Under the pieces are notes generated by a model. It saw only the letters and a program-made list of their open reading frames with translations. It ran no database searches and had not been told where the DNA came from. Both the position numbers and the translations under genes were made by a program. This document shows, one piece after another, positions 6,130 to 63,044 of a DNA stretch of 64,000 bases. The stretch is taken from positions 941,798 to 1,005,797 of the forward strand of contig NW_005434671.1 in assembly GCF_000315625.1 (NCBI RefSeq). Direction: 5' to 3'. Source of the stretch: Guillardia theta CCMP2712 (lineage: Eukaryota; Protista; Cryptophyta). Position 1 is the stretch's first letter, and every line of letters begins with the position of its first letter.

Positions 6130-9100
6130 TTATCGCCATGGGACTGGAGATCGCATGTTTCACCCGCCAGCATGAGGCGGCTCGATTACTGCAGGTGACA
6201 CAGCACGAGACGTTTTGAATAATATCCTCCCTCCCTCTCCTCCCTTCTCCTCCCTGTCCTCCCTCCCTCCCACTTGTCCCTCCCTCTTCTCCATCCCTTC
6301 CTCCCTCTTCTCCCGCTTTCTCTGCCTTCCTCCCTCCCTCCCTCCCTCCCTCCCCCGCTCCCTCCCTCCCTCTGCCTATCTTCCTCCCTCCTTCCCTTCC
6401 CTTCCCTTCCCTAACCTTGCCTCTCCACTCTCTTCCTCCATTCCTCCCTCTCCTTCTCCAACTCTTCATCCTTCTTGAGCAGCTCACCTCAGCAATCGTT
6501 CATCTCAGAGTTCTTCAAGAAGGGCCATCGACCAGCGAGTTTTCCACTGCAGTCTACAGCCCCTTGCGATACCTCGACAGTCCATCATGGTTGAGGAGGA
6601 GGAGGGAGTTGGAGTCAGAGAAGGGAAGGAGGAGGGAGGAATGGGGAGAAAAGGGAGGAGGGAGGGAGGAGAGAGGAAAGGGGAGAAAAGGGAGGTAGGG
6701 AGAGAGAAGGGAGGAGGGAGAGAGAAGGGAGGAGGGTGGAAGGACCTCTGACGAGTGGCTGCTGATTCTCTCAGACCTTTGAAGTTCTAACCGAAGAGAA
6801 GGCCAGGTTGGTAACTTCTCTTTCCTCGCAAGCCCAGCGCTGATGGAACACTCAGAAGTGCGATCGAGCCCGTTGTTGCTCTCGCCGAGATCGAGGACAA
6901 GGACAAGGACAAGGGCGAGGAGAGGAAGGAGCAGGAGGAAATGGAGGAGAATGCTATGGAGGAGGTTGTAGATGATAGACGAGAGGAGGAGGGAGCAGAG
7001 GAGGAGAAAGGCTGGGGAGCGAGTGAAGTTGACCAAGGGCAGATGAAGGAGAGAGCGAAAAGTGCAGTCGAGCTTCTGGGCTTTTACCATCAAGTTGTGT
7101 GGAGGTGAGTGGGTAGAGGAGGAGGACGTTTTGGATCCCTGGAGAAATGGGAGGAAGGGAGTGGAGAGGAAGAGGAGAAGCGAGGAGAAGGGTTAAGGGG
7201 AAGCAGGAGGTTGTTCAGAGGAAGAGGAAGAGGAAGAGGAAGAGGTAGTGAAGAGCAAGAGCAAGAGGTGGAGGACGAGGAAGAGGACGAGGAAGAGCAA
7301 GAGGTGGTGGAAGATGAAGAGGAAGAGGAAAGGGGATGGGAACATGGAGGGGGCAAGAGGAGGGGAGAAGCTTACTTCCTGCTCAGGTACCATGAAAATA
7401 TAATAAATCATTAAGTGGAATGGGAGGAAAGAGGGGGAAAGACAGGAAGAGCGATTCATTTATCTCCACATGCTCTCCTCCACTCTTCCAAGACTTCTTC
7501 GCTGCGGAGGTGAGATCAAAGGAGAGCTTCAAGAAAGAATCTACAGATGAGGAAAGGAGGAGCAGAAGGAGCAGGAGCAGGAGCAGAAAAAGAGGAGAGA
7601 AGGAGAAGGAGAAGGAGCAGGAGGGAGGAGACGAGAAGCAAGCACTCACCCGATTTCGACTTCTGTGGAGTTGGAATTCCCCGACTCTCCCTCGGATGAA
7701 CTCACCTCGACCCCCATCCTGCTCGGGCGTCAGGCAGGCAGGCAGGCAGGCAGGACCAAGTTGCCCTCACTTTTTCAGCTCCGTCTCGACAGACACAGTC
7801 ATCGAGCTTCTCTCACTGTTGTCCCTCTTCTCTTCCTGCTCCTTCATCTCCCGCAGCTGCAGCAACCTCTCCTCCATCCTGCTTGGCATGTCAGCGGGCA
7901 AACTTCAGCCCCCATCACCGCACTTGACACGTTGATCGTTCATGTACGTGAGCTCCTTCTGCAACAGCGTCGCCTGCAGTTGGAGTTGAGGGATGAGAGA
8001 GTCGGCGAGAGGCGTCAAGTGACACACGAGGTAGAGGGGAAAGAAAAGTAGAAAACCCGACAGGAAGGGTATGATAGAGGCAGAACATGGAGGGAGGGAG
8101 GGAGGGAGGAGGGGGGACAAGACCTCTGTCATGTAATTGCAAGACACGCAGGCTTGCATAACGAACTCAAGTTCGAGCTGTCCAGGAAGGCGCACTCTCC
8201 GCAGGATGGCAAGCTTGGAACAACGTTAATATCCTTGTACTTGACCTCCACCTCGTCACCTCTTGAAGAGCTTTCTTGCCTTCATGCATGTGACTGCAAG
8301 CCTGCAGGCTGCCTCAAAGACAGATAAACTCATGGACCTCAGCTGCACCTCGAAGAAGGATATGTAGGACTCGTCGTTGGGAATGAAACCTACAGTGCCA
8401 TGAGAAGGAGAGCGACGGTTGTTGAAAGCGTGAGCAAGAAGTTTGAAAACAAGAGCAAGTGGTGTGAAAACAGGAGCAAGAGGATTGAAAACGAGAACCA
8501 AGGGTTGAAAACGAGAACCAAGGGTTGAAAACGAGAACCAAGGAGGGGACCCAAAGGCTCAGAACAGGAGCAAGAGGTCTGAGAGGATCCGAGGGACCGT
8601 CGCTCACCACTCGATCGCATTTCTTCGAACAACTCGATCAGAATGCTCCATTCCTGCGATTGTGCGCAAAAGGCGATGAACTTGAACAAAGAGCAAGTCA
8701 GTCGAGGAACTGGAGCTTCTCCCTCCTATCTATGGGAAGTACCATGTCGTAGACCTCGTCGTTGAGCGAAAACCCCATCTTGAGAGACTTCTGCAGCACG
8801 GAAACTCCCTGCAAGGTAGCTGGAGCGTCAAGAATGTTGCCAGATAACACAGTCGGCGCGTACAAGAGGAAACTGTTTCTCCTCGGTCAGGAGGTTCAAC
8901 AAGTAGCCGATCGTCATGTATGTTGGGGCCATGCTGCAAGTCAAAGAAGTGATCTCAGCAGAACAGACGACGCCGCATCACAGAACGGCGAAATTCAGCG
9001 TTGGGGTTACGCTCTAGGGCACCAGAACGGAGGCACTCGGAGGAAACACAGCAACCAGCCAGGCAATCACAGGGCTTCTCATGTCTTTCATCACAGTCTT

Positions 9101-9839
9101 TCATCACCTTTGGTTCTCCATGAACTGGAACAGCCCCAGCGCTGCAGTCTGCGGCCAAGGGTGTTACAACAGCACAGCCACCCCGTCCAACGACTCACAC
9201 AATTCTCCCGCTTGCAGCAGAGTTTCATGAGAAACTCACATAGCTCAGCGTCGACCGTCAAGTTCTGTCGCTCACGAGCCAAAAACACTTTCTTGGTCTC
9301 CTCGTCCATGGGAAACATAGAGAGGTCAGTTGGTATCACCATATCCTGGAAGATCCGAGTAAATCTAACAGTAACTTCTGCTAAGATCTTAGTCTACTCA
9401 CGACATCGGAGGTAAGGTTTTCGTGTTCGAGATTGCCGCATGCAGGGCAAAGCTCTGCAGACTCGCTCAGTTCACGCTCTTTGGGATCGCTCTCCTCCGT
9501 CGAGGAAACGGAAAGGTCGAGGGAGGAGCCCTGGGATTCATCGGCAGAAATGTTGTAGTCATCCCTAACAGCATTGAAAGGGCCAGCTTTCTGTTTGTCG
9601 GACAGGTTGTCTGCATTCTCATTTATATGCTCGTGTTTAGCCTTGCTCCTGAACCTCTTCGATCGTTCGGTCTTGTTCTTGAATGCTTCAGGCACGAAAG
9701 ATCTCTTTTCTCCCCCTCTCAACTCCAGCCTGAGATGAACGTTGCGAGTTCCTCTTGCAGGGTCGCATGTGACAAGAAGGTTTCCAAGAGCCAAGATCAA
9801 GAGCAAATTCTGCATGGATCCTCTGCTAATCAAACTCAT
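6130..9839 (-). CDS. Signal-peptide protein with LxLRGG motif and a PPR-like helical segment (multi-exon; 3' end uncertain, possibly ~7380)
   Basis: N-terminus MSLISRGSMQNLLLILALGNLLVTCD…VHLRLELRGG. Internal FIAFCAQSQEWSILIELFEEMRSS|GFIPNDESY resembles a PPR motif. Downstream exons lie between SSR-rich introns. Confidence 0.55.
8432..8578. repeat. Intronic ~20-21 bp minisatellite (GAGAACCAAGGGTTGAAAAC-like)
   Basis: About 6-7 copies, the central ones identical and the flanking ones degenerate. Confidence 0.85.
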
Positions 9840-10154
9840 TCCTCAAAACCATGCAGCCTGATCCGGCCAAGTCCGAAGGCTTCGAACTAACGGAGCAGAC
9901 ACGGATTTATCCAGGCCTCAGCCCAGTGACATCTCCTCGCATCCTCATTTCCTCTTGGATCGTCTTCCCCTCCTCCTCTCCTCCCCCCTCTCATTTCTTC
10001 CTCTTCCTCTCTCGCCAGCCTCATGACTCCTCTCAGCGCCATCAGACGCTGTTCTACAAGAGCCATGGCATTGCGACTGATCGCCTCTGAGGCAGCTTTC
10101 CTCTACTAGTCTAAGATGGAGGGCAGCATTTCCAATTAGGGCCTCGGAGTTTCA

Positions 10155-10505
10155 ATAGGCCGCCGCGAGACCCACTGTACGCCGGACCGGGGCGGCGGGT
10201 CCGAGTGACTGTGACTGTGACTCAGTGAGCCGCCCGGGCCGCAGGCCCGGACCGGGCCACAGCCTCCGGGTCAGTAATTCGGACGCCACTCGGACAATTA
10301 GAAATGCCAGCCTGACAGCCGCTTAGTGACGAAATATTACGGCGGTACGGTAGCGCGGGGGGCGTGCCAAGGCTGGGGCTTGAGTGACTGATAATAGATA
10401 CTAGGCTGCCAAGCAGATTCAACTCATTCAATTTTGAGTAAAGACTGAACAGGGCTGAGCCGTTGAGTGACCGCTCGGCACTGCACCCCGGGCCGGGCCC
10501 GGTTG
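10155..10505. promoter_or_regulatory. CCGG-rich island in divergent promoter region
   Basis: CCGG/GGCC clusters, (GTGACT)3 and TGACTCAGTGA between a minus gene starting at 9839 and a plus gene starting ~10640. Confidence 0.5.
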
Positions 10506-27153: not shown

Positions 27154-29548
27154 ATGACATGGATGATGCTCTCGGCTACACGTGCTCTGTTCTTCTCCGT
27201 CATCTTACTGTTTGCCACTTGTGCTGCTCTGCAAATCGAGATAGTTGAGCCCGCGCAGGATCATGTATTGCAGGATACCTTGGATGTGAAGTTTTTTACT
27301 TCATTGGACCCAGATGGTGGAGATGAGTTGCATGGACTGGTGTTTCAAGCTATGATGGATGGAACAGCTGCACCGTTTCCCTTGACGAAACCCCTTGACT
27401 GCCAAGATGGGTGCAAGGTTCAGCTTTCCACAGAGGGCCTGAGTGACGGACAACACACGTTTACCCTCCTGATAGGAAGGCAGAATGAATATGATTTCGA
27501 TTTGTTTGCAGAGACATCGCTGGGCTTTGAAAAGATAGCAAAGACGAGCGAAGCAGAAGATCTCGGCGCCCGGGATCCGCCGACGCCACCGAAGCGGATC
27601 AAGCTGATTTCCCCAAAGAAGAACATGAGCTCTTTCATGGACCCCAACGACGTGAACATCCACTTTGTGGTGAATGACGACAGGCTAGGACAGAGTCATC
27701 ATCTGTTAGTGGAGCTTGCGGGCACCATCTTGGCCGACAACCACCGAGCCCCTGAGTTCAGGGTTGCGATACCCCGGGTCTCCCCGAGAGATTATCTTCT
27801 TTCTGTCCATCTCATCCAGGATCCACAGAGCAACGCTCCCGGGAGCAGGACTGAGTGGACGTCCAACGTAGTCTTCTATGTTTGGCCTGATCACTCGTGG
27901 GCTCGAAACCACGTGGCGAGGGGTGAGGGCCTTACTATTGCCAACGCTGGCGAGTTTGCTACATTCACCATAGAGGCTCGAGATGGGCACGGAAACTTGG
28001 AGGAAAGGGGAGGAGCGTCTTATTATGTGAGATTGCGAGGCCCTTCCCTCGTGATGGGACAAGTTCTGGATCATCAGAATGGAAGTTACTCGGGAAAGTA
28101 CTTCGTGGCTGAACCCGGGGAGTATTCGCTGGAGATCGTCCTGCACTACATTCACGGGAGTGGATTTCAAGATTTTGGGGAGGAGGAAAGCCAGGATGTT
28201 ATAGGATGGAATATTGCTGGGAGCCCCTTCACTGTCAACGTGATTCCGAGCAAGAAGCAGATGCTGTATCATGTAAACCCCTACATGCACACCCCACTGT
28301 GTTCCTGCAAACATTGTGGCTTGAGCGGCTTTGACGAGTTTGCCGGTGGAAGGTTTTCGGGCCGGTGGATTAGGAAAGAGGTTTGCGAAAGCATATCGAC
28401 CGGCTGCAAACTTGACGGGCAGCCTGATGACGAGTATGTCTGGGTGCCGTGGCACTGCAAACTGATGCGGTACGACCGAGAATCGGTGGGCGCATGTTCG
28501 AACCTCAACCAGTCGAGAGTCTTCATGGTTGGGAGCTCTCAGATGAGAACTTTGTTCTTCGATGTCGGCAAGGTAGACATATACGGGATGATGAGCTTTG
28601 ATGACTTACCTCCCTGTAGCTCCTTGGAACCACTCAAGTCCAGCCAAGGAAGTACTGGACTGACTTGGCTGCCACAGACATCAGTCCTCAGCTGTATTTC
28701 CATTGGATGGTGCCGGAATACAACTTCGAGGTGGTGTTGACTTTGATAGAAGTGAACTTGCGAAGTGACCGGGTTGGGTAGGGGAATTTGGACTATGAGC
28801 TCTTAGTGGAGAAGCTCTCAAGCTGGCTGGAGAAGTTCAGCTATGGTCCTCAAGACAAGGTGATCGTCCAGGTGAGGAGAGCAATCTCAAAGCCCGCACA
28901 CTCACACGCAGGTAGGCGAGTGTTCATGACATTCATCTGGGGTCATTGGCCGAGTACGAGGCAAACGTCAAGCAGCTCGCTAGATTTCTCAAGGGCCTCA
29001 AGGTGAGCTGAGTTGGTCAGTGAAGATGATTGACCCTCTCCTCCATCAGGGGACGGTCTTCTTTCGGACGGGCGATGCTCTTCATATCCCGTGAGCTCAA
29101 CTCTCAGTTTTCCTGTGTTCGCTGAACACTCTGGGAGCAGCCCGGGGGGAAGGTCGATCATCGAGCGAGGGCTGAGGGATCCGAGGGTCCAGGTTCGCAC
29201 ATGCTGCGTGACGATTGAAGCATGATGGCATCATGAGCAGCACGTGAACGCGATCGCACGCGAAGTGATGCGAGCGCACGACATCGCTTTCATCGACACC
29301 CACGTGTCGTCCCATGGCCGACCCGAGAAGTGCATCGATGGTAGCGAGCGCACGAGCCTGCTGATTGCACTGAAGCTTTTTCAGGATATCACTACTTTGA
29401 CAGAGAGACAGAGGAGCTGTCTGCGGCAGGTATGCACCCTCGGCAGAAGGAAAGGCCGTCACGAGTTGCTGCAGGGCGGGAGATCTGCATCGGAAACTCC
29501 GTCGCACGGGTTCAGGCTCAAGTCGTCATGTCTGTTGCATGCGCTTGA
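27154..29548 (+). CDS. Secreted protein: Ig-like/filamin repeats plus SGNH PC-esterase/NXPE-like domain
   Basis: Signal peptide; filamin-like motif (GEGLTIANAGEFATFTIEARD…NGSYSGKY…PGEYSLEI…IAGSPFTVNV); WVPWHC…RVFMVGSSQMR; C-terminal NAIAREVM…FID…CIDGYHY (DxxH). Confidence 0.8.
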
Positions 29549-49339: not shown

Positions 49340-49428
49340 CTGCTGGGTCTAGCCGTCTTCCTTGCAGGAGAGGCTTGCGCTTCTGCTGGGTCTAGCCGTC
49401 TTCCTTGCAGGAGAGGCTTGCGCTTCTG
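49340..49428. repeat. Perfect 43-bp tandem duplication
   Basis: CTGCTGGGTCTAGCCGTCTTCCTTGCAGGAGAGGCTTGCGCTT occurs twice. Confidence 0.9.
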
Positions 49429-50041
49429 CTCTTTGTCCTGAACATGCCGTCGCTCCGATGTGGTGGGAGTAAAGGTTTTCGCATCCTCCTCTTTTCCCAT
49501 TTTTCTGTTGAGGCGAATTTGTTGCCATTCCCTTTCGACAGTCTGGTTCGAAGCCAGCATCACTGCCGCGGCTCCAGGAATATGATCCTGCCCAAGTGGT
49601 GAGAGCGCGAGGTGCGCTATGCCACGGCCCCCAGGATAACTTAGTCGTTCTCGCATCGCACTGCGGAAGCTGAACCAAGTGGGAGGCGAACAGACTATCG
49701 GGGAGCACGCCGATCAAATCGTTTATTGCACACCAATATACATTGAAGCCTTCTTCCCTCCCCTCTTCACGCCTCGCGTCCCCCCTGCTCTCGTCTACCT
49801 CTGCGATCGCCCGCTGCCTCTCCTCGAGCTTCCTCCGCGCAGCAAGGATGTTCTCCAGACAGCTCCCCTTGCTCGCCTTGACGATGCCCGGCGGCTGTCT
49901 CGGGAGGGCTGGAGCTTGGGGGAGGAGGGGCAGGTCTCCGGCTGATCTCTTGCAGGGGAGGGCGACGGGGAGCGTGCGGGGAGGAGGGGAGGGAGCGGCG
50001 GAGAGGGAGACCTCGGACCAGAGAACGGTTACAGGGCGCAT
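49349..50041 (-). CDS. WSEVS/LENILAARRK microprotein family, copy 1 (stop lost by 1-bp deletion; reads through)
   Basis: MRPVTVLWSEVSLSAAP…SCLENILAARRKLEERQRAIAEVDESRG, then a shifted frame. Confidence 0.5.
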   Translation of the reverse strand: MRPVTVLWSEVSLSAAPSPPPRTLPVALPCKRSAGDLPLLPQAPALPRQPPGIVKASKGSCLENILAARRKLEERQRAIAEVDESRGDARREEGREEGFNVYWCAINDLIGVLPDSLFASHLVQLPQCDARTTKLSWGPWHSAPRALTTWAGSYSWSRGSDAGFEPDCRKGMATNSPQQKNGKRGGCENLYSHHIGATACSGQRAEAQASPARKTARPSRSASLSCKEDG

Positions 50042-51051
50042 GGCGTGCGAGAGGCAAGGAAGGGGGAAGGCAGAGCGAGGACAGGCTGGACGAGGGAGAG
50101 GCCGAGGTGATGGACAAGACGAGGCTGGAGAGGAGGGGGCGGGAGAGAGCAGCGAGTCGGAGCCTGATGAAGGAGTCGAAGGGAAGTAACTCCGGTATGG
50201 ACATGCAAGTGACACGGACCTGGCACGGATGTTGGATCCGGGATACGAAACGATGTATCTGTAGATATCTGGTTGGGAAGGGGGTTGCTGACGGAGACAT
50301 ATGGATTCGAACTGAGAGGATTTCGCGGCATTGCAACGAAGGCCCTGGGCACGGACCTGCAGTGACGAACGTAGATATGGAGGTCTGTATTTTGAGATCT
50401 TGGTAGTCAAGTCAGCAACCTCTTGGGAACATCAACTTTTTATGTCAGCATTCTGCCGCTACAGGTTGTCGATGGGATGTTTCCGAATGGCAGACTCGGA
50501 CGTGATCGTCCGACTGTATTGTCATGGTCCATTTACCGCACTATGCTTACCACGTCAGGCCACCGCCCCGGTCGATCAACCAGTCTCCAGGAACTCCCGG
50601 ACCAAGGAAGTGTACGGTGTACTTTACCGACTCGAGTGATGCCGGCGGCCCCGACCTGGGCCCGGCGCTCAGGCTGGCCGCGCGACGGAGCTGTCAGTTG
50701 AAGCACCGATTCATGACTTGTCATGCTGATTCAAGGCGCCACAGTCTGAAGGTCGGCGTGTCCCATGCGAGCATGGCTCGCTGTACGGAGTTGTATGCGA
50801 TGTTCGTGGAGCACTGCGATTCGTCTCGGACAACTTCAAGCAGAGCCTAAGTGGTATGTGTTCACTGCTGCACCACAGGCACTCAAACTTCATGTCAGGA
50901 GGATCCAGCGGCAAAACTTCGTCATCGAAGCGATACTCTAGTTATATTGTACAGCCATCAGCACATAGCAAGACAAGCAAGACCCTCGGCTCACATGGAT
51001 CTTTATTTACAAGCGCTATGTACATTTCCCGCCTATCGTCCCCTCCCCTCC

Positions 51052-51327
51052 TCACGCCTCGCGTCTCCCCCTACTCTCGTCTACCTCTGCGATCGCCCGC
51101 TGCCTCTCCCCGTGCTTCCTCCGCGCAGCAAGGATGTTCTCCAGACAGCTCCCCTTGCTCGCCTTGACGATGCCCGGCGGCTGTCTCGGGAGGGCTGGAG
51201 CTTGGGGGAGGAGGGGAAGGTCTCCGGCTGATCTCTTGCAGGGGAGGGCGACGGGGAGCTTGCGGGGAGGAGGGGAGGGAGCAGCGGAGAGGGAGACCTC
51301 GGACCAGAGAACGGTGACAGGGCGCAT
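51052..51327 (-). CDS. Microprotein family, copy 2 (91 aa)
   Basis: Intact ATG-to-TGA ORF with TGTAAATAAA downstream. Confidence 0.65.
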   Translation of the reverse strand: MRPVTVLWSEVSLSAAPSPPPRKLPVALPCKRSAGDLPLLPQAPALPRQPPGIVKASKGSCLENILAARRKHGERQRAIAEVDESRGRREA

Positions 51328-51921
51328 GCAAGACGAGGCTGGAGAGGAGGGGGCGGGAGAGAGCAGCGAGTCGGAGCCTTATGAAGGAGTCGAAGGGAAG
51401 TAACTCCGGTATGGACATGCAAGTGACACGGACCTGGCACGGACGTTGGATCCGGGATACGAAACGATGTATCTGTAGATATCTGGTTGGAATGGGGGTT
51501 GCTGACGGAGACGTATGGATTCGAACTGAGAGGATTTCGCGGCATTGCAACGAAGGCCCTGGTCACGGACTAGCTGCTGCTTACAGCCGTCAGCAACCTC
51601 TTGGGAACATCACTGCGAAGGAGGTCCGTGTGATAGGGACGTTTTATGTCACAGACGCCTCCGTAAAGACGCCGCCGGATGCGAAGGTTGTTAGTAGATG
51701 AAAAGTGGTGGAGTCCGTGCTATGTATGAAGTCTTACGAGGAATCGTTGTACTTTTACTCTGTTCCAGGAACATGAGATATGCTCTAGTAGTGAGAGGCT
51801 TGCGCCGTGACTCACTTCGGAACAAGTCCGTCACGAGGCTGACAATGATGTCCTTGTGACTATCCTCGACTGACCTCTTGAAGGAGACTCGTGCTCTGGT
51901 CTGCCTCCTGCCACCAGCTTC

Positions 51922-52215
51922 ATGCGCTCCCTCACCATCCGCTGGTCCGAGGTCTCTGTCTCCGCCGCTCCTCATCCCCGCTGTCCCTTCTTGCGCGCTG
52001 TCGCTCCAGCTGGCCCCGCATGTAGGAGAAGAGCGGACGAGTCTAAGGGGAGCATGACGTCCACGAGCTGCCTTGAGAACATTCTAGCGGCGAGGAGAAA
52101 ACATCAGGAAAAGCATCAAGCCCTTCGAACGTCCAAGCACGAGCAAGGGAAGAAAGTGGGTTCAGAGATGGATAGCCGAGGACGGGGAATGGACACGACG
52201 ACATGTAAATGCTAG
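51922..52215 (+). CDS. Microprotein family, diverged copy 3 (97 aa)
   Basis: MRSLTIRWSEVSVSAAP…SCLENILAARRKHQEKHQAL…; TGTAAATAAA just after the stop. Confidence 0.65.
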   Translation: MRSLTIRWSEVSVSAAPHPRCPFLRAVAPAGPACRRRADESKGSMTSTSCLENILAARRKHQEKHQALRTSKHEQGKKVGSEMDSRGRGMDTTTCKC

Positions 52216-52739
52216 AATGTAAATAAACTCTTTGCACTTAAAGACAGAAAGACATCATATCTCCCAAGAAGAGCCAAATACAGTCAACCTGAGCTTCATG
52301 CCTCCCTGTGCTTATTTCCAAGATGCCGCTATCAGCTTGTCCAATGCCATACCAGGTCTTATTTTTTATCATCTTGACGAGCTCGTGGGAAAGCAAGAGT
52401 AATGTTTTTCTTGTTGGTCATCAGTCGATGAGATCTTCTTTCCTCTTCAGAGAATCTCACGCCGCAGATGATCTTAGTATGTCAACAGGATCATCAAACT
52501 GCAGATAGCAGACTGAGGTACCAGGCGGTTTGCACCATGCTGCCATCCCTCCTCCTCCTCATCATCAACTGTCCGCATTCTTGAGCAGCTGAGGTGTCTC
52601 TTTCCAAAGAGGGAACAACCCTCGTGAGTCGTTCTCCTGGAATCTGTTCCGCACGCTGTCGATGCCTTGCGCCCTGTTGACTTTCCCTGTCTGCAGGCAC
52701 ATAAGAGGAGTGTCGTGATGCTTGTCTCTCCTCCACGGG

Positions 52740-54082
52740 TCAGCCTGGTGCTCCAGCTGGACCTTGACTACATCTCTCTGCCCGTAGTAGGACGCAATGT
52801 GCAGCGTTGCCGAATTTCTTTTCCCTCACCTTCACGTCCACTCCAAACTTGGACAGGAGCAACTTAGCCTCGGATCTTTGGTCTGCCGTACTTAGCCGAA
52901 ACATGAAGGTGAGGAGCGTTTTCAGATGTTTGCAGAGCTTCTGATCCTCATGGATACTTGCATCACTCACTACCTTCAACCACAAAAACCTGCACATGGT
53001 GCTGCACATGGTGCTGTATTCTTGCAGGAAGCTTTTCATGTGCATGTTGAAGTCGTCACTGTTGCCCTCATTTCCGGTGACGATAACTTCGTAGTCGATC
53101 TGTTCATCTTCAGAGTCACCGGCATCGCTCACTTCAGACTGACTGACTGTCTCCTCATCCGAGAGCTCACTCTTGTCTCCTGCTGGGGAGCAAAGGTGCG
53201 CTGTGCATACTGACATCTCCCTCATTTGCCTTAAATAGTTTTCCACCACCTACTCACAATTCATATTCGAAAGATATCGAGCCATCTTCGCGAGCCAGTC
53301 CTCGTTAAGGGATGAAGTCACTGGTGTTGCTTCTTCTCCCTGTATTGCTTCTCCATCTTCTTCCATCTCTTCTGCCTCCTCCTCAGGCCTTGAAAGACAG
53401 AAAGCTGAAGCATCTCAATGACCGTACAACTTGTACCCACTGAACATCTTCTTGCTTTAGCCATGGAAGTCGACAAAGATTGATGTCCGACAAGACCGTC
53501 ATACAATTTCTCTGTGAACTCAATCGCTTTATCATCTTCCAAGCCTCCTTTGTGTCCGATCGAAAAGTCAACAATCTTTGCCAGTTTCCTTTTATGTTCG
53601 TTGGAAGCACATGCGTTGAACACCACCAGCTGCGCTTGGGCAGCTCCCTCCTTCTCTGCCTGCAGATTGTGAGCACTGACAGCGTCCATGATGGTTTCAG
53701 AAACGACAATATTTCGGAAGAGGCCGATTGCTTCATTCCCTGCATGGCAACTGAAGTGAAGAATGAGAGGATGGCGATTATTGAAGTCTGTGCCGCTCAG
53801 GATGGCATGAACGTAACGGATACCTCCACTTAACTGCGCGCAGGACAATTCCCCCGCCCCATGCCAGGAGGCCTTGAGCTGACGAAAGATCCTGGACCGG
53901 ATGCGTTTACAAGTCGGATCACCTGAGACGTCTTGCGAGGCCGTGAGACCATCCAGCGCTGCCGTTTCCTTGTTCGCCGAGCGATCCGCCAACCACCACA
54001 GAAAGCGCATCCTGCAAGAGGCCATCAGTGCTGGCGATGATGGGAAGAAAGGCCTTTGGCGGGACGTGCTGAGCATATGCAT
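52740..54082 (-). CDS. CHAT (caspase-HetF-like) domain protein; intact by splicing or a pseudogene
   Basis: PLILHFSCHA (catalytic His), LVVFNACAS (catalytic Cys), FSIG…LEDDKAIEFTEKLYDGL..HQSLSTSM, matching the CHAT pattern HFsGHG/lvvLnAC/D.aa..F...FY..L. An acidic linker and a further domain follow in another frame. Confidence 0.7.
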
Positions 54083-54872
54083 TACGATGCCCTCGGATCT
54101 TCCGCTGTGCTGCTGATTTCAGTTTGCTCCGAGCGAGGTCCGGTATTCAGTCCATCATTGTCAAAAACAAGTGACATGCTGAAGTCCAGGATTAACCCAT
54201 GCCATCCACCTCCAGTCTCCTGCAGTTGCGAAAGTACTGATATGTCTCAAGGGAGGAAAGAGGAAGCCTCTCGCTCCCTCCCGGCCGGCGGAGTCCGACT
54301 CGGAACTCAGCGGCGGGCCGCCATATGTCAACGTCAAGTGCGGCCGCGGCCGCCAAGCCTTGAAGGGTGGCCCGGGCCCGGGCCCGGGGGGGAGGGGACT
54401 GAGTGAGCGTTCGAAACGGACTCGGAACGAGCGTGACGGGCCCGGGGCCTTGCTGGGCCCTCAGCATGTCGCACCTGTCATGCGTTGCTGACGACCCAGT
54501 GACTTTGGGCTAGTGCTAACCACACGGGGTATCCTCTATCACCGCTTCAAGTGTCTGAGTGAAAGAGTCTGATACAGGATATTTTATGTCAGCGACCTCG
54601 TGACCGTTTGAGTCTATAGTGATAGGCTACCTTCGGACCATCTGTCCGACCATTCTAGAATCTCCGGACGTGGCCTCCGTGTGAGCTTTGATGCCACTCG
54701 GGCTCAATGTTCCTCTAAACTCGTCGCCGGATGTTTACTACAGTGACTGATGATTCCAAAAACGGTCACGAGGTCGCTGCGTGACCAGGCAGAGCCGCAT
54801 TCCCCTTGACTTCTTCAACCACTCCGCTGCACCTCAACTTCCCCTCAACCACCAGCGCCGCCAAGACTCGCC

Positions 54873-55127
54873 ATGCGCCCTGTCACCGTTCTCTGGTCCG
54901 AGGTCTCCCTCTCCGCCGCTCCCTCCCCTCCTCCCCGCGCGCTCCCCGTCGCCCTCCCTTGCAAGAGATCAGCCGGAGACCTGCCCCTCCTCCCCCAAGC
55001 TCCAGCCCTCCCGAGACAGCCGCCGGGCATCGTCAAGGCAAGCAAGGGGAGCTGTCTGGAGAACATCCTTGCTGCGCGGAGGAAGCTCGAGGAGAGGCAG
55101 CGGGCGATCATCGGATTGCAGAGGTAG
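54873..55127 (+). CDS. Microprotein family, copy 4 (84 aa, 8-bp insertion variant)
   Basis: ATCGGATT insertion gives C-terminus IIGLQR*. Confidence 0.6.
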   Translation: MRPVTVLWSEVSLSAAPSPPPRALPVALPCKRSAGDLPLLPQAPALPRQPPGIVKASKGSCLENILAARRKLEERQRAIIGLQR

Positions 55128-56063
55128 ACGAGAGTAGGGGGAGACGCGAGGCGTGAGGAGGGGAGGGGACGATGGGCATGTACATAGCGCTTGTAAATAA
55201 AGATCCATGTGAGCTGAGATCGTGAGCGACAGGACATGCAGCACGGCACTCCACCAGAGTTGAGCGATGCCATTGCAGACAGCCGTGCAGACGGAGATGG
55301 CAGGAGCCCTGACTTGTTTGTACCTTGTTGAGCAGGAACGTCATTCATTGTCCGTGACTTTGAGTCAGTCGACGATGAGGCGTCTCAAGATGTGGAGACA
55401 CGAGAGGGATAAGAAGCTTTCCGTTTTTGAAAGCGACGTTGGTTTTGTGTGCATGATCTTCAATTGTTTTCTTCCTTGACGGAAACACAATCGAAGAGAG
55501 CAACTCACTTGCGTTGGTTCGGAGAGTCAAGCTTCTTTTATCAGAACACTTGCGAAATGAACTCCACTCAGACAAGATGATACTCGCATCATTCAGCATA
55601 TGCAAATTTGGACTCGGAACGAGCGTGAGGGCCCGGGGCCTTGCTGGGCCCTCAGCATGTCGCACCTGTCATGCGTTGCTGACGACCCAGTGACTTTGGG
55701 CTAGTGCTAACCACACGGGGTATCCTCTATCACCGCTTCAAGTGTCTGAGTGAAAGAGTCTGATACAGGATATTTTATGTCAGCGACCTCGTGACCGTTT
55801 GAGTCTATAGTGATAGGCCACCTTCGGACCATCTGTCCGACCATTCTAGAATCTCCGGACGTGGCCTCCGTGTGAGCTTTGATGCCACTCGGGCTCAATG
55901 TTCCTCTAAACTCGTCGCCGGATGTTTACTACAGTGACTGATGATTCCAAAAACGGTCACGAGGTCGCTGCGTGACCAGGCAGAGCCGCATTCCCCTTGA
56001 CTTCTTCAACCACTCCGCTGCACCTCAACTTCCCCTCAACCACCAGCGCCGCCAAGACTCGCC

Positions 56064-56318
56064 ATGCGCCCTGTCACCGTTCTCTGGTCCGAGGTCTCCC
56101 TCTCCGCCGCTCCCTCCCCTCCTCCCCGCGCGCTCCCCGTCGCCCTCCCTTGCAAGAGATCAGCCGGAGACCTGCCCCTCCTCCCCCAAGCTCCAGCCCT
56201 CCCGAGACAGCCGCCGGGCATCGTCAAGGCAAGCAAGGGGAGCTGTCTGGAGAACATCCTTGCTGCGCGGAGGAAGCTCGAGGAGAGGCAGCGGGCGATC
56301 ATCGGATTGCAGAGGTAG
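56064..56318 (+). CDS. Microprotein family, copy 5 (84 aa variant)
   Basis: Same as copy 4. Confidence 0.6.
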   Translation: MRPVTVLWSEVSLSAAPSPPPRALPVALPCKRSAGDLPLLPQAPALPRQPPGIVKASKGSCLENILAARRKLEERQRAIIGLQR

Positions 56319-57275
56319 ACGAGAGTAGGGGGAGACGCGAGGCGTGAGGAGGGGAGGGGACGATGGGCTGGACATGTACATAGCGCTTGTAAATAAAGAT
56401 CCATGTGAGCTGAGATCGTGAGCGACAGGACATGCAGCACGGCACTCCACCAGAGTTGAGCGATGCCATTGCAGACAGCCGTGCAGACGGAGATGGCGGG
56501 AGCCCTTTCTTGTTCTTGAGTGATAAGAAGCTTTCCGTTCGAAAGTGGGTTTGTGTGCATGATCTTCAATTGTTTTCTTCCTTGACGGAAACACAATCGA
56601 AGAGAGCAACTCACTTGCGTTGGTTCGGAGAGTCAAGCTTCTTTTATCAGAACACTTGCGAAATGAACTCCACTCAGACAAGATGCTACTCGCAGGGAAG
56701 GATAGCACTGAAAGATCGGGCTTGGATCAGGAGCAGAAGAGTGCCTGAAGCGAGAGTTTGCACGAGGCGAGTGGAGCAAAGAGCACTAGTTCTAGTCTGT
56801 CACACCCCGAAGCTTGACGGGTTGCAGACATCTACTGCGAATACTCAAGGCAACTCCTCTAGATCACACATACTAAAATAAACGTGGCATACAACTTGGG
56901 GAGAGAACGGAAAGATTCGTTGTAGATCGCTGCATCCTGTCAAGCTTCTGGGTGATACATTTCCTTGGTTTCGACTTATTTTTCGCTTACAAGCTGAATG
57001 GCCACTAATGGCATCAATCACGAGAAAGATATTACCGAAACTGATCTCCTCCTCATTCTTCGAATGGGGAGGAAATACTGCGATCATTCCTAGGGTTGAA
57101 ATTCGGAAGAGCTATCATCGCCGTGCATGCTAACGTACTGATATGCAGATAGTATCCCTGCTGTTGATTTTTCGACCCCTGTATCATCCAGTATGTGCCT
57201 ATCTCGATCTCAGCTCACATGGATCTTTATTTACAAGCGCTATGTACATGTCCAGCCCATCGTCCCCTCCCCTCC

Positions 57276-57551
57276 TCACGCCTCGCGTCTCCCCCTACTC
57301 TCGTCTACCTTTGTGATCGCCCGCTGCCTCTCCTCGAGCTTCCTCCGCGCAGCAAGGATGTTCTCCAGACAGCTCCCCTTGCTCGCCTTGACGATGCCCG
57401 GCGGCTGTCTCGGGAGGGCTGGAGCTTGGGGGAGGAGGGGCAGGTCTCCGGCTGATCTCTTGCAGGGGAGGGCGACGGGGAGCGCGCGGGGAGGAGGGGA
57501 GGGAGCGGCGGAGAGGGAGACCTCGGACCAGAGAACGGTGACAGGGCGCAT
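57276..57551 (-). CDS. Microprotein family, copy 6 (91 aa), left palindrome arm
   Basis: Intact ORF; AATAAA downstream on the minus strand. Confidence 0.65.
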   Translation of the reverse strand: MRPVTVLWSEVSLSAAPSPPPRALPVALPCKRSAGDLPLLPQAPALPRQPPGIVKASKGSCLENILAARRKLEERQRAITKVDESRGRREA

Positions 57552-57950
57552 GGCGTGGCAGGAGGAAGGAGGAAGGGGCGGAGTGACAGCAGGCATCTGT
57601 TAGGCATCTTTTGAAGGAGCCAAAGGGGCCCGGTCACGCGGAGAAATGGGATATTTTATGTCAGCGACCTCGTGACCGTTTGAGTCTATAGTGATAGGCT
57701 ACCTTCGGACCATCTGTCCGACCATTCTAGAATCTCCGGACGTGGCCTCCGTGTGAGCTTTGATGCCACTCGGGCTGGTGTAAACTGTAAGATGGATGGG
57801 TCGCCGGATGTTTACTACAGTGACTACTCCAAAAACGGTCACGAGGTCGCTGACATAAAATATCCCATTTCTCCGCGTGACCGGGCCCCTTTGGCTCCTT
57901 CAACAGATGCCTGCTGTCACTCCGCCCTTCCTCCTTCCTCCTGCCACGCC

Positions 57951-58226
57951 ATGCGCCCTGTCACCGTTCTCTGGTCCGAGGTCTCCCTCTCCGCCGCTCC
58001 CTCCCCTCCTCCCCGCGCGCTCCCCGTCGCCCTCCCCTGCAAGAGATCAGCCGGAGACCTGCCCCTCCTCCCCCAAGCTCCAGCCCTCCCGAGACAGCCG
58101 CCGGGCATCGTCAAGGCAAGCAAGGGGAGCTGTCTGGAGAACATCCTTGCTGCGCGGAGGAAGCTCGAGGAGAGGCAGCGGGCGATCGCAGAGGTAGACG
58201 AGAGTAGGGGGAGACGCGAGGCGTGA
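57951..58226 (+). CDS. Microprotein family, copy 7 (91 aa), right palindrome arm
   Basis: Intact ORF with TGTAAATAAA downstream. Confidence 0.65.
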   Translation: MRPVTVLWSEVSLSAAPSPPPRALPVALPCKRSAGDLPLLPQAPALPRQPPGIVKASKGSCLENILAARRKLEERQRAIAEVDESRGRREA

Positions 58227-59138
58227 GGAGGGGAGGGGACGATAGGCGGGACATGTACATAGCGCTTGTAAATAAAGATCCATGTGAGCTGAGATCGTGA
58301 GCGACAGGACATGCAGCACGGCACTCCACCAGAGTTGAGCGATGCCATTGCAGACAGCCGTGCAGACGGAGATGGCAGGAGCCCTGACTTGTTTGTACCT
58401 TGTTGAGCAGGAACGTCATTCATTGTCCGTGACTTTGAGTCAGTCGACGATGAGGCGTCTCAAGATGTGGAGACACGAGAGGGATAAGAAGCTTTCCGTT
58501 TTTGAAAGCGACGTTGGTTTTGTGTGCATGATCTTCAATTGTTTTCTTCCTTGACGGAAACACAATCGAAGAGAGCAACTCACTTGCGTTGGTTCGGAGA
58601 GTCAAGCTTCTTTTATCAGAACACTTGCGAAATGAACTCCACTCAGACAAGATGATACTCGCATCATTCAGCATATGCAAATTTGGACTCGGAACGAGCG
58701 TGAGGGCCCGGGGCCTTGCTGGGCCCTCAGCATGTCGCACCTGTCATGCGTTGCTGACGACCCAGTGACTTTGGGCTAGTGCTAACCACACGGGGTATCC
58801 TCTATCACCGCTTCAAGTGTCTGAGTGAAAGAGTCTGATACAGGATATTTTATGTCAGCGACCTCGTGACCGTTTGAGTCTATAGTGATAGGCCACCTTC
58901 GGACCATCTGTCCGACCATTCTAGAATCTCCGGACGTGGCCTCCGTGTGAGCTTTGATGCCACTCGGGCTCAATGTTCCTCTAAACTCGTCGCCGGATGT
59001 TTACTACAGTGACTGATGATTCCAAAAACGGTCACGAGGTCGCTGCGTGACCAGGCAGAGCCGCATTCCCCTTGACTTCTTCAACCACTCCGCTGCACCT
59101 CAACTTCCCCTCAACCACCAGCGCCGCCAAGACTCGCC

Positions 59139-59393
59139 ATGCGCCCTGTCACCGTTCTCTGGTCCGAGGTCTCCCTCTCCGCCGCTCCCTCCCCTCCTCC
59201 CCGCGCGCTCCCCGTCGCCCTCCCTTGCAAGAGATCAGCCGGAGACCTGCCCCTCCTCCCCCAAGCTCCAGCCCTCCCGAGACAGCCGCCGGGCATCGTC
59301 AAGGCGAGCAAGGGGAGCTGTCTGGAGAACATCCTTGCTGCGCGGAGGAAGCTCGAGGAGAGGCAGCGGGCGATCATCGGATTGCAGAGGTAG
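59139..59393 (+). CDS. Microprotein family, copy 8 (84 aa variant)
   Basis: Same as copy 4. Confidence 0.6.
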   Translation: MRPVTVLWSEVSLSAAPSPPPRALPVALPCKRSAGDLPLLPQAPALPRQPPGIVKASKGSCLENILAARRKLEERQRAIIGLQR

Positions 59394-59826
59394 ACGAGAG
59401 TAGGGGGAGACGCGAGGCGTGAGGAGGGGAGGGGACGATGGGCTGGACATGTACATAGCGCTTGTAAATAAAGATCCATGTGAGCTGAGATCGTGAGCGA
59501 CAGGACATGCAGCACGGTACTCCACCAGAGTTGAGCGATGCCATTGCAGACAGCCGTGCAGACGGAGATGGCGGGCGCCCTGACTTGTTTGTACCTTGTT
59601 GAGCAGGAACGTCATTCATTGTCCGTGACTTTGAGTCAGTCGACGATGAGGCGTCTCAAGATGTGGGGACACGATGAGCACGAATGGAAGCTGTCAGCTG
59701 GAAATGAGATGTAGGAATGGCTCGATATCGGATCACTTTCTATCGATCTGAATTGCATTCATTTTGTTTTGTTGGTAACCTCGAAGGTCTTGATGACTAG
59801 TCTTCGTTGTCCATGTTTCATGTGAA

Positions 59827-62043
59827 TTATTTCTTTTTGGGCTTGCCTTTTTGCTTCATTTTGCTGTCACTCTTCTTGCTCTTTCGCCTGGAATATCATC
59901 TGCATTAAACAAAGCAAACGCAGCATGCTTGTCAAATACCAACCTTTTCTGCTGCCATTTCTTGAAATCTTCCATTGCTTTCTTGTCTCGCTCCTTAAAT
60001 CTGCAGCAAGATTAATTTCCAGCCATTAGTTGGAGGCTGGACTTACTTCCCAACCTTGTTGTAGTATTGCACTTCCTGTACATCACCATAAAAACCACAA
60101 AGTGTGCCAACCGATGCTGTCACCTTAAGCTTAGCCTGACGCTGTGAGGTTTCCCAATCGTGTTGCGCATTGATGGCTTCAACAGAATCGGATCTGCGAA
60201 CAAGAGAATGAAGATACCCTGGGGGATTTTCATAACTTACACATCTGCAATCTTCTTCCATCGAGCAATTTCCTTCTTTTCCTCTGGCGTCATCCGATGC
60301 ATGGGCTCATCTTTTCCATCCCCTCCCCCTTTCTCTCTCGCCAGTGTCTCAAGCTTGGAGCGAAATTCTTTTGTTTTCTTTTTCCTGCATCGTTAATGTT
60401 ACTCAACTTATCATGGTTGAAGATATGCAATCAGTACTTTGTAGAAGTTGAATTGCTTGACTCGAGATCTCCAGGATATGGTGCCAGCTCATCCCAGTCT
60501 CCGCGGCAACCACAATACCTTCTACACTTCGAATACCCGTTTGCAAGATCTTCCCAGACATCATCGTCCATTCTTGGGCCAGGCACCTGATGGGATTCAA
60601 AACAAGTTCAAGGCGCATCTTATATTGCGAATATCAGGGAAGCAATACGTCAATTTTCATTATGTGCTCGGAGAAATCTTGGCCGGTAAGCTGCTGAAGC
60701 AAGCGAGCGGCCCATGTTCGAGCTGGCGCAATGTCCTTTTGTGCCTCTAAAACTCTCTTGGCGAGCTGGATAGCACCTGCAAAACAACTCATTCAAGGAA
60801 TTTTTGGCTCAGTTTGAAGGTTCACACCATTATCAATTATCAGAGATCTGAGTTTGCCAGGCAATTCACTAAGGAAGGATAACGCAGCGCACCCTTGTTC
60901 TCCCACATTGAATCTGGAGAAGGCTCAGACTCATGAGGGTTGTGCAAAGCCAGACAATACCCTTCTCTCTCATATTCATGCGCATGCCCGAAGTTGTGTA
61001 ATGCCTTGATGATTCTTTCAACGCCGCCGCTCTCAGCCACTGCACTCATATATCATCCGATCGGATAGAAAGTTCTCTTGTCACCTTTGCCTGCAAGAGC
61101 CAAGTTCACTTGAAGTTTACCACCAGCTGGACAGCCCGCGTACTCCAGTCCATAAGTGATATGCGTTTCATTCACCACTTTGACCAGAAATGTCCAGATG
61201 AAGATGCAGCCGGCCTCCTGCGGCACCATCACGAACAAGGCAGCGAGGAGCCTGTGAATTTCTCACCTGGACATGAACGCTTTTTTCATGCTTTGCCATT
61301 GCACTCAACACTGTCTCGACTACGCGATTCTCCACGGCCAACTTTGTTCAAGGTCAGTTTGCAGCCACCTTCCTAGCACGTCCTCACCAAACAGTTGGAA
61401 GAGTGGTTGAAAACAAGGTTGGACAGAGCTCTGATCCCTGTGCTCTGTATGTCTGCATTTCCCTCGTGCCGTTTCATGGCTTGAACAAACAATGGGAAGG
61501 CCCCTAACTTTCCTAATAGGTTCTGTTCGCACGTTACGAAATGCTCAACAGGCTGTTGACAACATGCCTGGTTTATCATGTGAGCCCAACCGTCCACTCC
61601 ATACGGAGGTCTTGGTTGTGCATACGCCAAATTCGTCGCTAGACGAAGTCCCTCGAGCACGATCTTTGCAGAGTGGAGGTGGACCTGACAAACAACGTAA
61701 ATCTATGGTACCTTTGAATTCGCGCTACCTTCAAAGTTTCCACGAGCGCCTCACAGCCATTCTTGTTCTTTCCTATCCTGTATTGCTTTTCTCCATCCAG
61801 ACAGATTAAAGACAGAGCATTGAAAGCTTTGTACACGACATGCGGGTCCTTGGTCTTATCCTGCAAGTTCTGAAGGTGGATAGAGCTTGCTCTCTTGCAC
61901 CGTGGGCTCACAGGGGGGACTTTAAATGGAACCACCTTCTTGGCCCCCCCCCGAAGATTCAAGTTACTTCCAGTGTTGATTGTGAACAGGCCACAATGGC
62001 AGGCTTGCAAGGAGACAAGGAGCAACAAGGTCAAGCCTTTCAT
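59827..62043 (-). CDS. Armadillo-like repeat protein with signal peptide, LNLRGG motif and Lys-rich C-terminus
   Basis: MKGLTLLLLVSLQACHC…NLNLRGG; ARM-like GKLGAFPLFVQAMKRHEGNADIQSTGIRALSNLV, NGCEALVETLK and ESGGVERIIKALHNF; tail KSKKSDSKMKQKGKPKKK*. Confidence 0.75.
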
Positions 62044-63044
62044 CACAGATACCGCCGTTTTTCAACGTCAATTATGCTCGCCAACAACTCTAGCGCAGTC
62101 AAGCTGTGCCTGGTCCCATATCAAGGCACAGGGATCGTTACCATGAGCTTTGTTTATCCTTTCCGCTTCCTCTCTCTCTTCCTCGTCCCCTCCTCTTATC
62201 CTCTTCTTCTCTTCTCCTACTACCTGGCTCTGCCATGCCGATCTGCGGACGCATCGATCATGTGTAGGCCCTCTTCCCCAGAAGGCCCGGGCCAACCGGC
62301 AGCGTCAAGTCCGAGTGCTGCCTCCGACTGATCACTATTGACAAATCTTGTGTGCCGGCCCCCACCTGCTTCTCGCGCGTTCACGAGGAACGCACAGGGA
62401 CGGAGGTTCCGCTCAGCTCACGGCAAGAAAGAGAAAACCCCCGACACTGATCGATCAGACTTCTGGGGGATCAAAGCAGCGACCTGTCTTGGGCGAGAGT
62501 AGAAGCCAAGGATTTCAGTGTCTCTATCGTCGTGTAGTAGGGACTCGTGAACATGTCCGATCAAGCCAACCAAGCTTCCCACACAGCCGAGAGCACCATC
62601 CCATCTGGAGCGAGGAAGATGACCGATCAAGAACGAACAGAACATGTTGCTAACGTGATAGAAGCTCTCACGAAGCAGGTGATGTATTGATTTGCACTTG
62701 CAGCAATGGCTGTCTAACATGTTGCAGGGCTTGGCGATGTCCAATCTTCCCGAGGACATCAAAGGGAAGCTTGATGACTTCGTAAAGAATGGCTCTGCCT
62801 GTGAGCTGCAGATTCCAACCCCCAAGGGTTTTGTTTATTGCAAGTTGACAAATCTGATAGACAAGTGAATCTTGATTAGTCTAGTCATCGCCAGGGTACC
62901 CGAGGACACGGATTTGGTAGACCTTTATTGCTTCCTTGCTCAGCTTTACATTTGGTTACTGTACAAAAAACAACCCCGGCACATGTATGTCAGGGCACCT
63001 ATGAATCTACTGCAGCACTCTGCAAGTCCACAACCTCACTCTCG

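Follow-up and report, generated by a model that had tools for sequence, protein, structure and literature searches.

Introduction

Does the tail of ubiquitin, present without the rest of that protein just behind a predicted signal peptide, serve as an import or maturation signal in an alga with a complex plastid? The question is raised by GUITHDRAFT_160701, a nucleus-encoded gene of Guillardia theta CCMP2712 that is listed as 'hypothetical protein' [Guillardia theta CCMP2712] (P0001, found by word search) and whose product is a PPR protein. The original prediction had placed such a leader in a host with a complex red plastid, and the host is indeed one: G. theta is a four-membrane red-plastid alga with a nucleomorph and SELMA. 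Here, we describe the leader, its conservation and its recurrence in the window (the whole stretch of 64,000 nucleotides that was analysed), which is nuclear DNA of G. theta, with the locus on nuclear scaffold JH992967.1.

Import through SELMA is ubiquitin-dependent (PMC12412216). In the accounts of Gould et al. 2006 and Gruber et al. 2007 that are relayed by PMC6105332 and PMC4494062, the leaders of periplastidal proteins are made up of a signal peptide plus a stretch that resembles a transit peptide and has no aromatic residue or Leu at +1, whereas stromal import needs an aromatic residue or Leu at that position (PMC4494062, PMC6105332); this +1 residue rule for periplastidal versus stromal import is set out in PMC6105332, PMC4494062 and PMC5443833. 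About 2,400 nucleus-encoded periplastidal proteins have been estimated for G. theta (PMC4494062), and its aspRS3 is periplastidal by prediction (Gile et al.). Cryptophytes do not have ptDUP, which acts as the SELMA deubiquitinase in diatoms and haptophytes, and 'an alternative enzyme' is expected in them (PMC12412216). A zinc-finger/Ufm1-specific-peptidase-domain protein is encoded in each of the four cryptophyte nucleomorphs sequenced; it is described as a putative deubiquitinating enzyme to which no machinery is assigned (PMC6559170). For the sorting of periplastidal or nucleomorph from stromal or secretory proteins in cryptophytes, the one known rule is negative (no aromatic residue at +1); a positive, scannable motif would allow sharper predictions of the periplastidal proteome, estimated at 2,400 proteins, and point to a protease class.

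Results

The PPR gene is transcribed and spliced as a nuclear gene with spliceosomal introns, and its parts are the following (window coordinates):

7456..9839, minus strand: coding region of GUITHDRAFT_160701, 13 exons, about 426 aa from M1 (418 aa from M9)
9839-9402, 9345-9199, 9148-9108, 8933-8864, 8808-8743, 8680-8608 and 8389-8349, minus strand: coding exons 1-7, from the joints of RNA contigs
8301-8260, 8213-8124, 7973-7924, 7878-7770, 7717-7650 and 7501-7456, minus strand: coding exons 8-13, from RNA contigs, the last two via P0003
9840..10064, minus strand: 5' UTR, 225 nt, to the limit of the RNA contigs (record 11 of run X9 and record 10 of run X5 begin at 10064/10065)
8124..9345, minus strand: exons 2-9, PPR helical-repeat region (about residues 160-330), from Pfam and the AlphaFold model

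The ATG at 9839 (minus strand) starts an ORF of 152 codons. Contigs from two RNA-type runs (X9 and X5, aligned to 7700-10300) leave no gap between 10064 and 9402 and, after 9402, skip nine short stretches of 45-218 nt, all GT..AG on the minus strand; a tenth intron, 8123-7974, follows from the listed contig pieces. When spliced and translated, the RNA contig model is one open frame, and it is matched by the JGI transcript-derived protein P0003 (418 aa), which supplies two further 3' exons. Since the RNA contigs span exon 1 and splice at GT..AG introns, the LRGG leader is present in the mature mRNA. The transcript-backed model (RNA contigs and P0003), with 13 exons and about 426 aa, differs from the NCBI model P0001 (373 aa), which ends early and is without the residues from 8680-8608 (part) and 8213-8124. 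Between 7650 and 9401 the introns of this gene are very short (45-62 nt, plus 150, 174 and 218 nt) and all GT..AG, and micro-exons of 41-42 nt occur among the exons. Part of the gene stretch is also found in several freshwater, estuary and lake metagenome runs.

The leader encoded by exon 1 is laid out as follows:

9765..9839, minus strand: signal-peptide-like N-terminus M1-C25, predicted cut after V-T-C (hydropathy and -3/-1 rule)
9711..9764, minus strand: 18-residue spacer D26-G43, without lysine, ending in the motif (direct reading)
9740-9711, minus strand: VHLRLELRGG (residues 34-43)
9728-9711, minus strand: the core of the motif, LELRGG
9402..9710, minus strand: remaining exon 1, with a basic stretch after the GG (EKR..., Lys at GG+2), an acidic Ser-rich linker and CPxCG-x4-HENLT

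Signal peptides were called heuristically, from hydropathy and the -3/-1 rule, and cut positions were predicted by eye. On such a call, VHLRLELRGG does lie behind a signal peptide, as had been read from the DNA: Arg6 comes first, residues 12-23 form a hydrophobic core (Kyte-Doolittle mean of 2.67 over 11 residues), and V-T-C ends at residue 25. The layout does not change if Met9, the start in P0003, is used in place of M1. With a cut after Cys25, itself placed by eye, the +1 residue is Asp26, neither aromatic nor Leu. The core of the motif is encoded by CTG-GAG-TTG-AGA-GGG-GGA. The GG itself was considered as the signal-peptidase site and rejected, as it lies 20 residues beyond the hydrophobic core and has a disfavoured Arg at -3.

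The original prediction's further claim, that the tail of ubiquitin is present without its fold, agrees with what was found: 18 residues lead from the predicted cut to the GG, no ubiquitin-family Pfam match was obtained, and residues 1-151 are unstructured in a single-sequence AlphaFold model of low confidence (mean pLDDT 48.8). A beta-grasp is impossible in 18 residues, so the mimicry is limited to the tail. In the same low-confidence model, helix pairs occupy residues 153-322 and a long C-terminal helix follows. The protein, earlier labelled only 'PPR-like', is a true PPR protein by Pfam (PPR_2 reaches 35.4 bits, above its cut-off of 30), which makes the earlier label correct and too cautious; PPR_3, PPR_long and PPR also match, each under its own cut-off. 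About 100 low-complexity residues lie between the GG and the folded PPR domain, and the GG is therefore not an obvious junction of leader and mature protein. A CPxCG-x4-HENLT-x-DV element (9402-9450, minus strand; residues about 131-146) stands out in a linker that is otherwise poorly conserved. Both G. theta and H. phi have it, and it may form a small metal-binding knuckle ahead of the PPR repeats.

A HMMER scan with exon 1 against 1.84 billion representatives returned two proteins, that of G. theta itself (P0001) and one of Hanusia phi from EukProt (P0002), the sole ortholog of the PPR gene from a distinct species that was found; Hanusia shares the family Geminigeraceae with Guillardia. Full-length, profile and HMMER representative searches gave no deeper orthologs, only the protein itself, its JGI copy and that of H. 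phi, and a metagenome scan with the PPR gene gave only distant PPR proteins at 25% identity (L001-L006). The Hanusia leader has the layout of the G. theta leader. Over the first 146 residues the two proteins are 43% identical, and their longest identical run is RLELRGGEKR, flanked by residues that differ. At 43% identity, the chance of 10 consecutive identical residues somewhere among 146 is ~0.02, and the two species belong to the same family, so the conservation is supportive evidence of modest weight. P0002 also carries two insertions of about 20 residues exactly at the positions of G. theta introns 1 and 5. The transcript behind its prediction had probably kept some introns, and the insertions imply that these intron positions are conserved between the two species.

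The same layout occurs in a second gene of the window, at about 62 kb, with these features:

61726..62043, minus strand: exon 1 of an ARM-like gene (gene 2), ATG at 62043, from the MMETSP ORF P0005
62043-61993, minus strand: signal peptide M1-C17, core residues 4-14, ending C-H-C
61962-61945, minus strand: LNLRGG core (in NLNLRGG), followed by a basic stretch, AKK...

This gene had been described beforehand as unrelated and of equal layout, and the leader at ATG 62043 with its LNLRGG is carried by an MMETSP transcript ORF (P0005), which splices after ...ALVETLKV into ARM-like repeats (a weak ARM_ARMC5 match in Pfam). Its hydrophobic core at residues 4-14 has a Kyte-Doolittle value of 2.16, its spacer is 16 residues long and ends in NLNLRGG, its +1 residue is Gly18 or Leu19, the by-eye cut being ambiguous, and its motif is encoded by TTG-AAT-CTT-CGG-GGG-GGG. 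The relatives found were only the MMETSP transcript and an environmental contig of 1,987 bp (L007, ENA ERZ930064) with 94% DNA identity to window 60309-62288, which indicates a close Guillardia relative in that metagenome; in exon 1 it differs from gene 2 at two places, both in the spacer, and so carries little information. The layout is thus established for two independent G. theta genes, both in the window.

Across the three aligned leaders (PPR, Hanusia and gene 2), the invariant positions are a few Leu, the Cys before the predicted cut, L-x-L-R-G-G, the Lys at GG+2 and a KR pair 18 residues past the GG, and lysine is absent from both G. theta spacers. The pair reads [SC]-K-R (window 9650-9660 and about 61890-61900, minus strand), and the basic stretches resemble bipartite nuclear-localisation signals; from their sequence they could be a second signal, for nucleomorph import, or a coincidence.

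Among the 128,000 six-frame residues of the window, L.LRGG has exactly two occurrences, against ~0.5 expected from composition and from Markov-shuffled DNA; alone, this total is unremarkable. Both sites, by contrast, lie 16-18 residues past a signal-peptide-like start. There are about 40 such ATG ORF starts, mostly spurious, and the zone behind them makes up ~1% of the translated space, giving an expectation of ~0.005 and a two-hit P of ~1e-5. The leader exons of the PPR gene and gene 2 have no collinear DNA similarity, and the Leu and Arg codons of their motifs differ; the likeness is therefore one of protein and not a DNA repeat, which points to protein-level selection as the source of the shared motif. 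Nor is the motif a general trait of signal-peptide proteins, since a filamin-repeat ORF of 528 codons (27154-28740, plus strand) with a clear signal peptide and a Pfam filamin match of 38 bits is without LRGG.

Elsewhere in the window, an ORF at 47599 with the look of a signal peptide and LHLR was rejected as a start exon (a splice-acceptor-like tract lies upstream, and another frame looks coding). A repeat family of about 8 copies with short ORFs (49349-59422) contributes, in alternative frames, 7 of the 12 six-frame LRGG strings of the window, none of these 7 being L.LRGG. Assembly gaps of 100 N each lie at about 4800 and about 45400, with low-complexity flanks (GAG/CAG-type, with Pro/Ser/Leu-rich frames).

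Discussion

The position of L-x-L-R-G-G behind two signal peptides, its preservation in Hanusia and its different codons argue that it is very probably a real, selected element of these leaders. Its link to periplastidal or nucleomorph import, drawn from the host, from the kind of cargo and, for the PPR leader, from the Asp at the predicted +1 position, is probable to a lesser degree. The original prediction had held that a PPR protein fits poorly with secretion, and PPR and ARM-like proteins are both non-secretory types. Our preferred reading, which we put forward tentatively, is that of a bipartite-type leader with L-x-L-R-G-G for periplastidal or nucleomorph import, most likely cut after the GG, in line with the original prediction of a presequence that a DUB-like protease removes and that serves as a sorting or maturation code. 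Its order would be an ER signal peptide, the 18-residue lysine-free spacer ending in L-x-L-R-G-G and a Lys/Arg-rich stretch, with the motif as a selected linear element in the leaders of host-encoded proteins of nucleo-cytosolic or RNA-binding type. Such a leader would travel through SELMA, across the periplastid membrane, into the periplastidal compartment or the nucleomorph, and a cysteine protease that is specific for ubiquitin tails and acts in the periplastidal compartment would cut it off after the GG; the nucleomorph-encoded zinc-finger/Ufm1-specific-peptidase-domain protein is a candidate for this protease, as a guess. In ubiquitin and NEDD8 this pattern is the tail that proteases recognise, which makes a cut after the GG the most economical mechanism. 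Against such a cut, canonical deubiquitinases depend on the globule of ubiquitin and act poorly on short LRGG peptides. Taken by itself, cleavage after the GG seems to us possible, with the balance somewhat on the other side, and that a large class (hundreds or more) of host-encoded periplastidal or nucleomorph proteins matures through a presequence of this kind, a ubiquitin-tail mimic cut by a deubiquitinase-type protease of the periplastidal compartment, is a somewhat weaker prospect still, and on present evidence unlikely.

The motif may instead work without being cut, as a mimic of the ubiquitin tail that is bound by the import machinery or by the periplastidal ubiquitin system and acts as a sorting or retention signal. 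An E3, a Cdc48-Ufd1-Npl4 adaptor or a deubiquitinase acting as a receptor would then be the binder, with the Lys at GG+2 as a ubiquitin acceptor. We regard such a mimic as distinctly unlikely, although it shares the positional and conservation evidence of the preferred reading. The lysine-free spacer suits it, as do the Lys at GG+2, present in three of three leaders, and the long low-complexity region past the GG, given which the GG need not begin the mature protein, and so does the ubiquitin dependence of SELMA (PMC12412216). Against it, LRGG is foremost a protease site in all known systems. Moreover, no ubiquitin-binding module is known to recognise the LRGG tail on its own, in the absence of the globule's Ile44 patch.

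A second alternative keeps a cut and changes the protease, making the motif a propeptide or export site cleaved in the ER or Golgi by an enzyme other than a deubiquitinase (PEXEL/plasmepsin-V-like or convertase-like), on the way to another endomembrane destination (secretion, ejectisomes or the periplast, for example) or onward to the plastid stroma, with no particular tie to the periplastidal compartment. The distance of 16-18 residues past the signal-peptide cut resembles that of PEXEL, TEXEL and RxLR, a KR pair stands 18 residues after the GG in three of three leaders, and the plastid stroma is a typical place for PPR proteins; the usual site of PPR action is in plastids or mitochondria, which makes a stromal destination possible. 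The leaders, however, do not fit RxLxE/Q/D, RRLxx or RxLR, cargo of PPR and ARM type makes secretion unlikely, and the predicted +1 residue of the PPR leader is Asp, not the aromatic residue or Leu that stromal import requires. The filamin-repeat protein, which has a signal peptide and does look secretory or membrane-bound, is without the motif. We give ER or Golgi processing little probability. That the resemblance is functionless, arising by chance, from composition or from ancestry (for example a leader exon spread by duplication), is very improbable: a motif of only six residues, a sample of two genes and a count of 2 against 0.5 expected, not significant alone, would allow it, but both sites stand at an equal place behind a signal peptide (expectation ~0.005), the exons have neither collinear DNA similarity nor the same codons, and the block is invariant in Hanusia.

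A ubiquitin-tail tag in cryptophyte import leaders appears to be undescribed. In the literature searched, no paper joined LRGG or RGG to Guillardia theta, cryptophytes or nucleomorphs bar one coincidental match, an earlier description being possible, and neither the ASAFind 2.0 paper nor the one on SELMA phylogeny (PMC12412216) makes mention of such a motif. We take what is described here to be a bipartite leader that carries a defined motif from the tail of ubiquitin; there is a fair chance that it is categorically new if deubiquitinase-type cleavage holds. If the preferred reading of import and cleavage after the GG is true, the motif would be a positive, sequence-defined code for import and maturation and the first case of deubiquitinase-type chemistry as an organelle presequence peptidase. 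It would also make good the lack of ptDUP in cryptophytes, and this PPR RNA-binding protein would then belong to the remnant cytoplasm or nucleus of the endosymbiont.

Set beside known systems, the leader resembles in outline the periplastidal bipartite signal, sharing with it nuclear encoding, an N-terminal signal peptide (followed, at the predicted cut of the PPR leader, by the non-aromatic Asp), a basic region and cargo of cytosolic or RNA-binding type; the published rule for that signal is negative (no Phe at +1) and contains no positive motif, whereas here L-x-L-R-G-G stands at a fixed distance. The tails of ubiquitin, NEDD8 and ISG15 (L-R-L-R-G-G or L-A-L-R-G-G) are cut by deubiquitinases, and viral papain-like proteases cut at LxGG sites. 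Both leaders repeat the six-residue pattern of the ubiquitin and NEDD8 tails (LELRGG and LNLRGG; Leu at P6 and P4, Arg at P3, Gly-Gly at P2-P1) and, like ubiquitin-fusion precursors, place it upstream of an unrelated polypeptide. Unlike ubiquitin and the ubiquitin-like modifiers, they have no beta-grasp (about 70 residues), and the G. theta element sits in a leader of secretory type and not in the cytosol.

PEXEL of Plasmodium, TEXEL of Toxoplasma and RxLR of oomycetes are likewise short motifs 15-30 residues past a signal peptide on unrelated cargo, a span within which the motif ends in the PPR leader (18 residues past the predicted cut) and in gene 2 (16 residues). All three decide a destination after the ER, and PEXEL and TEXEL are also protease sites. 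Neither G. theta leader matches their consensus, gene 2 being without an Arg upstream of LRGG, the likely protease class differs, and the destination in G. theta would be an endosymbiont-derived compartment and not a host cell. The double-glycine leaders of bacteriocins, N-terminal leaders that end in Gly-Gly and have upstream Leu, are removed by the papain-like C39 cysteine-peptidase domains of ABC exporters; they are bacterial, have no Sec signal peptide in front and are unrelated, so that the likeness is one of analogy only. PUBL of Toxoplasma (PMC5487736) and ptDUP of diatoms (PMC12412216) are components of the import machinery with full domains, unlike a motif carried on cargo, and they show ubiquitin-type chemistry in import across the periplastid membrane and GG-dependent function in the periplastid space, as the leader described here would on the preferred reading.
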